A stretch of DNA of 64,000 nt from Trichosphaerium sp. ATCC 40318 (Eukaryota; Protista; Tubulinea): the NCBI GenBank assembly GCA_038496445.1, contig JALMLS010000612.1, forward strand, positions 760,998 through 824,997, written 5' to 3'. The first letter of the stretch is position 1; each line of letters begins with the position of its first letter. The position numbers and the translations under genes were made by a program. Below, piece by piece: positions 25,971 to 29,627 of this stretch. Under the pieces are notes generated by a model that had not been told where the DNA came from, ran no database searches, and was given only the letters and a program-made list of their open reading frames with translations.

Positions 25971-26654
25971 CACGTTGTACCTTAGCTTGTATTTGTACCT
26001 TAATATCAGTCAATAAACATAAAGTTCGCGTACATTCCACCGTTATAAAAGGCTTTTTGGTTGTGTGACATTCCTACGCGATTGAATCTTTCTTGCACAC
26101 TATGACAAAAGTTTTAAGTGTTTATTTGTTAGTAAACGATGTTGTTCGGTTTGGATAGACTTGACTTCTCAACTGCGTAGCCTACTTTTTAAACGCTACC
26201 TCCTATTTGTAGCAAGCACGTGGCTTTCTACTCTTAAAGTCACATTAATAAAGTGCGCCATTGGATACACTAATGGGATAGCTTGCAGAGTTGCACAAGG
26301 CTACCTATGACCAACTGTCCAATACTAACACAAGTCACTGGCCCTCTTTTAAACGCAAACTTCCCTACGTCCAGGATTGATGGTACTACTGTGAGGTCCA
26401 ATTATTCATTACAGAGAACTGCTGAGGTGGTATTTTGAAGCTTGCGCACTAGGCTTTCACAACACGCAAAACCGGTGACAAGTGGCTATACAATGCCTCA
26501 TAGCAGGGATAAAACGAAACAAAGGTAATAAATCATTATTAATACTCGTTTATGTTCCAGGTTTCTACCAAAACAAAATACTATCAAATATACAATAAAA
26601 AAATAAGTCAATATACAAATTAAACGAGTCCATCTTTTGGGGGTGTGAAATAAA

Positions 26655-28893
26655 TCATGAGCTTCTCTTGTAACAACAACGTATTTCTTTTCCTCCTGGA
26701 CAGATACCGATCTTGAACTGTTTTCCATGTTGTACGCAAGTATTAACATTCATACAAACACCTTGGAATCCATATGCATAACAAGTTTGATCGTTATCGA
26801 AATTTCCAGCATAGTAGTTACCAAAATATAATCTGGCTTCTTGGACACGACGCCAAGTAAGACCAGCTACTCTTCGTCCTCTTACTTTGTTGAATAACAC
26901 ATAAGCCTTGGTGAGCTTGGCTATTTAAATGGATTAGATGAGCTACATGCGCGCGGAGAACAACAAACAAAGAAAAAAGTTGGTCAGCGCACCTTCATTT
27001 CTTTCGCCTGCGTTAACCAATTTGAGCACTGTTGATGTTTTGAATTGTTTTGTACCAATGTTGAATGCAAGTGAAACTAGCGAATTAAACTGGTTTTGGT
27101 TTAATTTTTTAGTTACGAGTGTTCTAAAACAAACATCAGCAATTTGATGAGAAAATAACGAGAAAAAAAAAACGGTGTTCGAAAAAAAAAAGTGTGAGGT
27201 ACCTCACAGCATTTGAGTATAACTCAATATCAAGACGAAGAATGTCTTCAGCTTGTCTGAGGGTTATGTGATCATTTGTCATCTTGATAGCGTAATTCTT
27301 AATAAGGTAATAAGTAAAACGGACAATCAAGATTGAGGTTAAAGAAAAAAGCCGTACATGTCCTTTTGAAGTCATTCCTTTGATGTTTTGACAATCTTGA
27401 GCTCTACAACTGTGTCCGAAACCAATGATACGTGTACCACTTACACCATAGTAGAATGATGGTACGAACTTTTCTGTTCCACGCAAAAACTTGATACCAA
27501 AAGCATCAATGTACATTCGTGCGTTAACATTAGTTTTGACTATAGGTCTGTATTGTGTCAACTCTTCTTCTTTCTTATCAAAGTCTGGTTTCGTAGATCT
27601 ACAATAAAACGAATAAGAACAAATACACAACAAGAAAAAACACGTGAGTGACTCCATAAAAAGACCAAAAACAAACAAAAAAAAACGTTCAAAAGGCGAA
27701 AAAACCTGAAGAATAAAGATTTTCTTCTAACTTTTCTTCATAAGTTTAAACTTGATGTTACGTACTTTTTTTGTATGCAACATTGGATGTTAGAAGGACC
27801 AGGACAAAAACCAGGAGAAGGTACTCCTTTTTTAGAATAGCAATCAGAGGTTTTAATGCAAGAACCCTTGCTGCTACCAATAGTGCAAAAACCGTAGGTT
27901 GGCGCATTTGTAGGTCTTGGCTGCCAAGGTTTTTTTGTTGGGTTTGTTGGGTTTGTGGGTTTTGTAGCGCCACCACCGCTATTATCTTCATTATCACCAT
28001 TGGATTGTGAAAGAGGGACGCAAGGAGGTTCGCGAGCAAAGCCAGATGCAGGAGTTCTGAGAATGGCATTATCTGTTTCGCCATTTTCGGTCCATAAACC
28101 GTCTACTTTGATTTGTTCATTTGGGTGGTTGTAATTCCACAATACTTGAAAAACCCTGACAGATTCACCATTAATGCGTTCGCTTGGATTAGGACGAATG
28201 GAGTAATGTGGAACATCACGTGATCCCTTCCATACAAAACCCGCATTCCTTAAAGGATCTTTGACAGAGCTACACCAGCCACAACCCACATCAATGGCCA
28301 TACCAAGCATATGGTCACTGTAACCTACTCACGTACTTAGAACACCACTAGGGAATTAAAAAAAATGATAATACGCACCAGGTCTTGCTGCAAGTGAAAT
28401 GCCGCAACTTCCTTGCCAATGCCAGAACAAAACAGATTGTGGAAAAGATCGGAGTCCTTGTGTTAAAGTAAAACGACCACCAGCGGCAGTAGCTCTTCTT
28501 AATGCTTGTGCAGCACGCGGTTGAAGCCACCTAAAGGTGGTGAGTAGAAATACAGCATCAAAGGCACATACGGATAAGCACTTTCACCAAAGGTTAGGCC
28601 TGGAACATTTGCTATGTTTTCAAATACGCCTGGGAGCCTACACAAAGTATGCTTGATGAGTTGCTCGGTCAACCCTTTGACAACTATAGAACGGCAGGAG
28701 GGTCTAGGCCTTCTAAGAGCATCTATAGCAGCATAATATTAGTATACGCTAAAAACTAATAAAACGCGTATAGCTGCTACGTACACCACCCAACGGTTCC
28801 TGAGATTAACTGCGATTGCGTAGGTAGAGCAGTAGAGAGATGCATGAAAGCTAAAAAGCAAACACACAACCCTAACGTAATAGTTGTCTGCAT
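26655..28893 (-). CDS. Secreted multidomain peptidoglycan hydrolase: M15 Zn-peptidase + PG-binding domain + Cys module + GH24 lysozyme + Cys module
   Basis: Signal peptide MQTTITLGLCVCFLAFMHLSTA. M15 motifs LRSFPQ, SDHMLGMAID and DVPHY. PG-binding VRVFQVLWN...IKVDGLW. GH24 motifs TEKF...IIGFGH, LNQNQFNSLVSLAFNIG and GLTWRRVQEARLY. The two halves splice in frame. Confidence 0.85.
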
Positions 28894-29627
28894 GCGTTGC
28901 AACTTTCGTTTTTTCTTTTTGTTTTTGGTGGAGTGGAGACTATATTCAGTAAGCGGCGGGCATTTTTGTAAATTGAAAGTTATTACGTACTATAGCGCTA
29001 CCTGATACCTTTCTACCTCACTATAGTACCTTTAGGAATTGCGCTTACAGAATTCTTCTCCCTTAACTGAGAATTATGCTTAGCTTTGTCTGGTACCGTA
29101 CCATGAAACTCAATATTAGTAGTTCGACTTATAATGTCTGAACGTTAGCTATTTCAATAAGAACTACCTTTGGTTTTTCGAGAAGAGCGAAAATAACTTA
29201 TCCAAGGGTGTTGTGACAAAGTAATACCTGAAAGGTTTTCGAAACACTTTGTGCACGAAAAGTGTACTCCACTAATTATTACGAGATTTTGGCGAAATTT
29301 GGTCTTTGTTGATTTGAAATCATCGCTTTAACTTTACCCTTCGCTAGCTATTACATTGTAGACATAAAGAGTTTTGTTTTGGGCTATGACTTGGTCATAA
29401 AGTAAAATAGCTTGCTCAAAGTTGTAGGGCACAATAAATTACGCCATCCACTGCAATATATAGAAAAAAACGGAATTAAACATACACCTCAAGTGAATAA
29501 AGAAAGTTTCAATTGAAAAAGGAAACAATGTCAACATAGCTATTGTACATCTTGTTTTAGTTTACACAACCTGTATTTCCGTCATCTCACTCGTAGTGAA
29601 GATGAAAGAAAAAAGCATAAAAGGTTT

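Follow-up and report, generated by a model that had tools for sequence, protein, structure and literature searches.

A spliced protist gene joins an M15 peptidase of myxobacterial type to a GH24 lysozyme that has probably lost its normal catalytic activity

The minus strand of a 64,000-nucleotide stretch of the genome of the protist Trichosphaerium sp. ATCC 40318 (contig JALMLS010000612.1, positions 760,998 to 824,997; the whole stretch is called the window below, and its own numbering is used throughout) carries, between positions 28893 and 26655, coding sequence for two wall hydrolases of prokaryotic type, an M15 zinc peptidase and a GH24 lysozyme. A preliminary description, made from the sequence alone, took these as parts of one intron-containing gene whose secreted product attacks peptidoglycan in its glycan as well as in its peptide stem. 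The questions raised by this locus are whether the two halves are made as a single protein and, if so, whether both of them can cut. It is one spliced, expressed eukaryotic gene, and its product is an expressed fusion, predicted to be secreted, of horizontally derived wall-hydrolase domains in which the normal catalytic activity of GH24 has probably been lost, as judged from its residues. The overall best explanation, to which we give a probability of about 0.6, is a one-bladed lysin: the M15 half works and the GH24 half is probably weak or inactive. The encoding gene would be a single nuclear one, in an intron-rich protist that probably feeds on bacteria, and the product would act as a secreted, disulfide-rich peptidoglycan hydrolase.

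Gene structure, expression and layout of the protein

The gene model was built from three-frame translation and splice-site landmarks. It comprises eight exons and seven GT-AG introns, with 567 codons and a TGA stop (coding region 28893-26655, minus strand; ATG at 28893, stop codon at 26657-26655). Exons 1-4 lie at 28893-28785, 28722-28572, 28530-28379 and 28324-27766, and exons 5-8 at 27598-27358, 27297-27203, 27123-26993 and 26920-26655. The introns measure 62, 41, 54, 167, 60, 79 and 72 nt in order; their GC content is 29-42%, against 41.5% for the exons, and a CTNAY-like branch motif is present in most of the seven. One public run holding the stretch, X1, was aligned to positions 26400-29100. 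Its type is unrecorded, but it is almost certainly RNA because of its contig statistics (53,766 contigs, 17.6 Mb in total, the longest 6.9 kb) and the precise loss of all seven introns. A single contig of 1747 nt from this run maps from 28888 to 26607 and skips every modelled intron exactly, the joints reading CT..AC on the plus strand, which equals GT..AG on the coding strand. Since intron 4, lying between the two halves, is among the introns missing from the contig, the fusion transcript is real, and the single intron-containing gene proposed earlier is borne out by both the eight-exon model and the contig. The same contig covers a 3' untranslated stretch at 26607-26654 and ends at 26607. 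No further copy of the fusion gene was found in the window by tblastn.

The encoded protein consists of a signal peptide, the M15/LAS zinc peptidase, a Pro/Thr linker, a cysteine (Cys) repeat, the GH24 lysozyme and a second Cys repeat, and its mature part contains 20 cysteines. The signal peptide is predicted at residues 1-22 (MQTTITLGLCVCFLAFMHLSTA; 28828-28893, minus strand). Residues 4-19 are the sole strongly hydrophobic stretch of the whole protein on the Kyte-Doolittle scale, which fits the secretion that had been claimed, with the cleavage site only inferred; similar leaders open the homologues P0015, P0159, P0160 and P0161. The low-complexity linker of Pro, Thr, Gly and Asn was read from the translation at residues 241-283 (27888-28016, minus strand) and is unconserved in the alignment with the P0015 group.

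The M15 half

The M15/LAS zinc peptidase unit, including a PG_binding_1-like tail, occupies residues 45-240 (28017-28699, minus strand, split by introns 2 and 3). Over these residues the spliced protein matched family members by phmmer with E = 1e-40 to 1e-46. Hundreds of relatives of the 185-aa translation of exon 4 were present among 1.84 billion representative proteins, and neither the protein itself nor any relative of more than 50% identity was found in that library (best E 4e-24). Scored exon by exon, the translations covering M15 gave no Pfam match, and the 185-aa exon-4 piece had no match among PDB sequences by phmmer; homologues of the unit pass the Pfam family VanY (PF02557) at 25-36 bits.

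All three motifs by which the peptidase had been recognized are present: RSxxQ at R114-Q118, SxHxxGxAxD at S140-D149 and DxxH at D174-H177, which reads D174-V-P-H177. The metal and catalytic residues H142 (28313-28311), D149 (28292-28290), D174 (28217-28215) and H177 (28208-28206) span 28206-28313 on the minus strand, with R114 and Q118 upstream of them (28451-28437, minus strand). The zinc ligands, His-x6-Asp and the distal His, are kept as H142, D149 and H177, and so are the catalytic acid D174, three residues ahead of the distal His, and the RxxxQ substrate motif, R114...Q118. These columns are invariant or near-invariant in the family alignments A1 and A2, as are the motifs LRTLPQQ, SNHxxGLAxD and DxxH, and they align to HxxxxxxD...DxxH of Ply500, the L-alanyl-D-glutamate peptidase of phage A500, whose M15C type is the one closest to this unit. 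The half as a whole retains 37 of the 45 columns conserved at 90% or more in the family.

Among solved structures, the family profile matched best Ply500 (2vo9, E = 2e-7) and LysB4, then LdcB and VanY-type carboxypeptidases (names as given by the depositors), and the DxxH of this half parallels the segment KDYPHFE of Ply500. An AlphaFold2 (AF2) model of the homologous segment P0015:28-236 reached pLDDT 94.4, and with it Foldseek returned LdcB, Ply500, VanXYc, LysB4, VanX and the Sonic hedgehog N-domain with probability 1.00, which identifies the LAS fold. Ply500, LysB4 (6akv) and the LdcB/VanY carboxypeptidases (4jid, 4mph, 4ox3) share this fold and the zinc site, and Ply500 also the DxxH; identity is about 20%, and unlike the present protein they have no PG_binding_1-like tail and carry different cell-wall-binding domains. 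Judged by its residues, the M15 active site is intact. The most likely target of the half is the peptide stem, and the bond that it cuts is probably L-Ala-D-Glu: the endopeptidase type suggested in the preliminary description fits both the DxxH motif and the best matches, Ply500 and LysB4, from which the specificity is inferred.

The GH24 half

The GH24 domain extends over residues ~345-513 (26820-27537, minus strand) and is split by introns 5-7. Exon 7 alone scored 46.9 bits on PF00959 (cut-off 22.3; E = 4.3e-12) and matched the GH24 lysozyme structures 9kbs, 6et6 and 8b2s, which supports the family membership claimed for this half. The spliced domain matched the GH24 domains of P0162, P0163 and P0015 with E = 1e-26 to 1e-30, and in the GH24 tree this copy falls inside a clade (99*) with the P0015 group. 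The GH24 domains of that group are 41-53% identical to those of springtails and fungi, and share 39-41% identity with the endolysins of 1151 phage records. From these comparisons the phage-type ancestry of the half is clear. It shares PF00959 and the catalytic Glu with T4-class GH24 enzymes, phage endolysins and springtail and fungal GH24s, the eukaryotic comparators including the muramidase of Trichophaea saccata (8b2s; PMC10394673). In contrast to known GH24 enzymes, it is without the Asp and the Thr of the active site and is flanked by Cys repeats, not by SH3-like domains.

The active-site segment lies at 27427-27474 on the minus strand. In T4 lysozyme the active site is made up of Glu11, Asp20 and Thr26, the last of which has been called catalytic (PMC5606550). 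Their columns were counted in 54 aligned domains, namely this one and 53 homologues. The column of Glu11 holds Glu in all 53 homologues, and the residue is kept here as E366 (27474-27472). The column of Asp20 holds Asp in 50 of the homologues, Cys in two and Glu in one; only here is it Gly, G375 (27447-27445). The column of Thr26 holds Thr in all 53, and only here Ile, I381 (27429-27427). The residues flanking the Glu are also altered, from EFEG to GTEK. The half retains 21 of 33 conserved columns, the lowest number among the 54 sequences, and its terminal branch measures 2.85 against a median of 0.25; no other copy in the set is as degenerate or evolves as fast. The disulfide pair C388 and C393 and most motifs of the C-terminal lobe are kept. 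With Gly375 and Ile381 in place of Asp20 and Thr26, and with so few conserved columns left, the claim that the enzyme attacks the glycan as well as the peptide stem is not upheld. The simplest reading of these changes is that the GH24 half is probably weakened or repurposed.

Does only one half work?

A one-bladed lysin is probable because the M15 site is intact and GH24 is without two of its three key residues. The working blade would be the N-terminal M15/LAS zinc peptidase, which is of myxobacterial type and would have been acquired along with its hairpin tail. The GH24 domain descends from a phage-type lysozyme; since it has lost the Asp and the Thr in this copy, and its rate of evolution is roughly tenfold that of related domains, its muramidase activity is probably weak or absent, and it could have been retained as a glycan-binding or scaffolding module.

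Several points weigh against this explanation. None of the proteins with this architecture has been studied by enzymology, and the evidence of expression comes from one small run of unrecorded type. The evidence for the LAS fold is that of a modelled homologue, whose identity to the whole spliced protein is about 30%. The M15 half has lost 8 of the 45 conserved residues and has a branch of 2.0, so that its activity is not assured. For GH24, phi29 gp13 and GH184 are lysozyme-like, are without the second carboxylate and can nevertheless be active (PMC10394673), and the title of a further paper also indicates activity of such enzymes (PMC5674055). Because Asp-less enzymes of the lysozyme fold can be active, the inactivity of the GH24 half is unproven and this half may still cut.

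The alternative that survives best is a true double enzyme, with GH24 active either via Glu366 alone, in the way of a lytic transglycosylase or a goose-type lysozyme, or by means of a substitute residue. Besides the Asp-less enzymes just mentioned, the retention of Glu366, of the reading frame, of the C388/C393 pair and of most C-terminal-lobe motifs speaks for it. However, it would have to accommodate the loss of both Asp and Thr in this copy alone among 54, the change of the Glu flanks, the smallest number of conserved columns in the set and a branch ten times as long, and we consider it unlikely. The very long branches of both domains could also be explained by a decaying or neofunctionalised paralogue, in which neither half would be efficient and which would be a peptidoglycan binder or sensor or an incipient pseudogene; the variant of the X1 contig described with the Cys repeats below, which would remove one Cys of repeat 2, could be taken in the same sense. 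In contrast, the frame of 567 codons is intact over eight exons, it is spliced and expressed correctly, and the genome copy has kept all metal and catalytic residues of M15 together with all 12 repeat cysteines. Such a paralogue therefore appears rather improbable.

The third alternative concerns intron 4 (27599-27765, minus strand), which links the M15-CRR half (CRR, Cys-rich repeat) to the GH24 half. It is a phase-2 intron of 167 nt, GTACGT...TGTAG, and its length is two to four times that of the others. Within it, at 27599-27657 on the minus strand, the open reading frame (ORF) list gives an in-frame ATG (27657) with a hydrophobic leader of 19 residues, MESLTCFFLLCICSYSFYC. Both features would suit two adjacent genes, an M15-CRR gene ending in CIQKKYVTSSLNL followed by a stop codon, and a GH24-CRR gene starting from ATG 27657 with its own leader. 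But the X1 contig passes directly from 27766 to 27598, a GT..AG joint at which 167 nt are skipped with 241 nt on the shorter side, and there is no depth inside the intron in this run. The contig thus places both halves on one transcript and, as does the gene model, confirms the phase-2 GT-AG intron at about 27599-27765 with the in-frame junction CIQKK-STKPDF, as it had originally been proposed. Relatives, moreover, hold both halves in one uninterrupted ORF, as on contig L001. The two-gene model is rejected as the main form by the contig and is left with very little probability. A stand-alone secreted GH24-CRR protein could still begin at ATG 27657 as an alternative start; a GH24-only isoform of this kind has no support in run X1. 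Bacterial or phage contamination of the assembly, which the prokaryotic or phage type of both catalytic domains might suggest, is refuted by the spliced contig, with its seven spliceosomal introns removed in RNA. The eukaryote-type leader, the eukaryote-typical Cys repeats and two U6 small nuclear RNA (snRNA) genes on the same contig of the assembly also speak against it, and its probability is negligible.

Origin of the M15 unit and its tail

The M15 unit of the favoured, M15-driven lysin has close bacterial counterparts in Myxococcota, where it is matched over the whole 200-residue unit by proteins named 'M15 family metallopeptidase' (for example Sandaracinus amylolyticus P0173, Labilithrix, Polyangiaceae, Chondromyces apiculatus). 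These share with the protist unit the conserved Cys pairs, RxxxQ, SxHxxGxAxD, DxxH and the tail AFQxLWN...DGxYG; unlike it, they are without Cys repeats and without GH24, and have other C-terminal regions. A scan of prokaryotes, with one genome per species, gave at least 551 loci, which were ranked by comparison with the first, bacterial-like member of the query alignment. The best 80 of these were examined and are nearly all from Myxococcota, with Sandaracinaceae, Polyangiaceae, Labilithrix, Byssovorax, Chondromyces, Kofleriaceae and Bradymonadia represented. The M15 unit of the present gene is 36-43% identical to myxobacterial loci over ~196 residues by tblastn, and up to 45% identical over the columns of the tree alignment. 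Outside Myxococcota the M15 family with the built-in tail is hardly found at all; it is often multicopy within a genome, and two of the loci (L017 and L041) each hold two adjacent copies. Among known phages, relatives were found only as Microbacterium phage endolysins and six Prochlorococcus phage records, which are 31-36% identical to the M15 unit of P0015 and cover at most 77% of it, none reaching 80%.

In a maximum-likelihood tree of 48 sequences, eight eukaryote-like M15 units from proteins bearing repeats or GH24 form a clade (98/90) among the myxobacterial sequences. The branch of the present gene is very long, at 2.0 compared with a median of 0.33, and is paired with a second long one; the pairing with P0131 or P0016 in the first M15 tree is possibly long-branch attraction. 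Placement of this M15 inside the repeat-bearing eukaryote-like clade was not rejected by the approximately unbiased (AU) test (p = 0.30). Named eukaryotic carriers of this M15 family include Brachionus rotifers and transcriptomes of EukProt. Apparently the unit is mobile and pairs with varied glycosidases, since fusions of the myxobacterial-type unit to GH114 (PF03537) also occur, in P0021, P0181 and P0376. The bacterial or phage origin first suggested for the two catalytic domains is supported, for M15 by the Myxococcota and for GH24 by an identity of about 40% to a large number of phage endolysins.

The preliminary description had also listed a separate peptidoglycan-binding module behind the peptidase. 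Its motif, VRVFQVLWN...VDGLW, is present at residues 193-215 and is the counterpart of AFQxLWNxNxPxDxIxxDGxYGxxT, which is invariant throughout the bacterial M15 family. It opens a PG_binding_1-like helix-loop-helix at residues 193-233 (VRVFQVLWNYNHPNEQIKVDGLW...SGF; 28038-28160, minus strand). On PF01471, a three-helix model of 57 positions, 12 of 40 family segments matched weakly (best E 0.034), and the segment of this gene gave no match at E up to 10. When the segment profile was compared by hhalign with two true PG_binding_1 domains, the probabilities were 83% and 67% over only 35-37 columns, which correspond to the first two helices, and the AF2 model of the homologue has two helices at the position of the tail. 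By these profile comparisons and the model, the tail is a truncated PG_binding_1-like hairpin, predicted to pack on the M15 core, and not an independent domain. The motif therefore stands, while the separate module does not: it is an integral C-terminal part of the bacterial M15 with two helices only, and since its motif is invariant across the bacterial family it was inherited with M15 and not added later.

Cysteine-rich repeats

The two Cys modules noticed at first are present at residues 284-320 (27777-27887, minus strand), ending in CPGPSNIQCC, and at residues 526-562 (26673-26783, minus strand). Both were located by a regex match; the first also fits the repeat consensus, and the second aligns with the second repeat of the P0015 group. 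Their spacing, C-x8-C-x5-C-x11-C-x7-CC in both, is that of the published CysRRep or CRR repeats, Cx6-9Cx5-7Cx8-11Cx7-8CC (bioRxiv 10.64898/2026.06.07.730663). Repeat 1 fits the consensus of 91 repeats, ...G.C..T..C....G.S..G.CPGP.NIQCC. In alignment A3 it shares 23-57% identity with 89 repeats from other proteins, and in searches it matched many multi-repeat proteins. Secreted eukaryotic CRR proteins with prokaryote-type domains have been described, PF00959 being present in 26 of 124 and Peptidase M15 in 6 of 124 (PMC7379824).

At position 26678, within repeat 2, the X1 contig differs from the genome by A>G on the plus strand, which would change Cys561, the first of the terminal CC, to Arg. 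Allelic or strain variation, RNA editing or a mistake in assembly may account for this difference.

An AF2 model of repeat 1 (46 residues) had pLDDT 86.5. Foldseek of this model against the PDB gave no significant match. VIA-align ranked beta-defensin 4 first (Z 3.6), ahead of helianthamide (3.5) and big defensin (3.2); other peptides of the beta-defensin fold also appeared, and the clip domain of PPAF-II (2b9l) gave Z 2.0. All of these are low Z values, as is expected of a domain of this size. A beta-defensin-like fold is accordingly only predicted, from the model. The repeat profile (A3) also matches weakly the clip domain of PAP-2 (2ike, E = 0.003), and the published CRR work names defensins and a tick carboxypeptidase inhibitor, not clip domains.

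In about 490 kb around the 80 myxobacterial loci no Cys repeats were found near the M15 genes, which argues against the transfer of a ready-made M15-repeat protein and agrees with addition of the repeats on the eukaryote side. Most bacterial matches to the Cys repeat are also from Myxococcota (bioRxiv 10.64898/2026.06.07.730663). The two repeats, predicted to be beta-defensin-like, would be an addition of the kind typical of horizontally acquired antibacterial enzymes in eukaryotes, and may stabilise the protein or help its targeting.

Relatives, known systems and meaning

The architecture had been put forward as one not known from characterised proteins. It is indeed uncharacterised, but it is not unique, as colinear and reversed relatives exist (P0015 and P0017, respectively) and double hydrolases with CRR have been published. 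The colinear relatives are the environmental proteins P0015, P0159 and P0160 (~800 aa; JGI), which their source names 'GH24 family phage-related lysozyme', and the fragments P0161-P0163. P0015 is colinear with the fusion protein over residues 45-565 (E = 3e-67, ~30% identity). The proteins of this group share with it the leader, the M15 with its PG_binding_1-like tail, a Cys repeat, the GH24 and another Cys repeat; unlike it, they have kept Glu, Asp and Thr in GH24 and possess a third Cys repeat, ~250 extra residues and a hydrophobic C-terminal tail. Contig L001, which encodes a protein of the P0015 type and carries both halves without interruption, is mRNA-like, with a length of 2455 nt, a GC content of 37%, which resembles that of the window, and an AATAAA near its end. 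The colinearity, the common GH24 clade and the result of the AU test point to shared ancestry of the fusion with the P0015 group. The fusion would then be old, with colinear relatives that have an intact GH24 site in other eukaryotic transcripts.

The reversed order, GH24 followed by several repeats and a VanY-type M15, is found in P0017 (691 aa, from a metagenome scaffold) and in P0152; P0007, the truncated representative of the P0152 cluster, aligns as P0152 does. The scaffold of P0017 (L002; ENA, 2701 nt) has an intronless ORF with GH24, at least four Cys repeats and the VanY-type M15, and a GC content of 47%; close to the 3' end of the scaffold lie a (GA)n run and an A-run. In P0225 a repeat is followed by GH24 and a C-terminal VanY domain with ExxH. 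Since colinear, reversed and ExxH versions exist, GH24 and M15 have been combined repeatedly in repeat-bearing proteins.

The protein is of an already known kind, in that wall hydrolases linked by Cys repeats, including double ones, have been described in silico. Two such proteins come from Neocallimastix californiae: A0A1Y2FMX2, with GH25, Peptidase M15 (PF08291) and CysRReps, and ORY21964.1, with a glucosaminidase, NlpC/P60 and CysRReps (Daugavet et al., PMC7379824; bioRxiv 10.64898/2026.06.07.730663). Like the present protein, they are secreted eukaryotic proteins in which prokaryote-type wall hydrolases, one glycan-cutting and one peptide-cutting, are joined by Cys repeats, and they also have an intron just past the repeat, ahead of the second enzyme domain. 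They differ in having GH25 or GH73 instead of GH24, and M15_3 or NlpC/P60 instead of a myxobacterial VanY-like M15, as well as in their domain order and their rumen-fungus host, and are known in silico only. Rusticalin of the ascidian Styela rustica (PMC6339383, summarised in PMC7379824) likewise combines Cys repeats with an M15 like Ply500, which is also the best solved match of the present M15 family; unlike the protist protein, it comes from an animal and has a single catalytic domain and N-terminal repeats. The sole experimentally studied CRR enzyme found in the literature is the placozoan lysozyme PLys, a GH23 enzyme with N-terminal Cys-rich repeats that acts in the extracellular digestion of bacteria; its repeat region lends stability to the proenzyme and is lost when the enzyme matures (PMC12855814). 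PLys differs from the present protein in its GH23 family and in having a single catalytic domain.

With this gene the published pattern of Cys repeats with acquired wall hydrolases gains a domain pair and a host group that are both new to it. It is a transcript-verified protist gene in which a wall peptidase of the type found in predatory myxobacteria is paired with a phage-type lysozyme via eukaryote-specific repeats of a predicted defensin-like fold. A degenerate lysozyme site beside an intact peptidase site also offers a case for asking what role a retained dead hydrolase domain may have. One tentative idea, which we hold to be doubtful, is that protists possess a family of two-bladed lysins under complementary degeneration, in which each paralogue has lost either the M15 or the GH24 site and the dead domain serves as a substrate-binding 'handle'. 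If so, this would be a natural experiment in which an enzyme is turned into its own targeting module, here with M15 alive and GH24 as the handle. Secreted, disulfide-stabilised lysins of this kind are, in addition, candidate antibacterial enzymes.

Elsewhere in the window, the two U6 snRNA genes are both full-length. They lie at 45780-45887 on the minus strand and 47989-48096 on the plus strand, each with an Rfam score of 104.8 bits, and are divergent and ~2.1 kb apart on the contig that carries the fusion gene.

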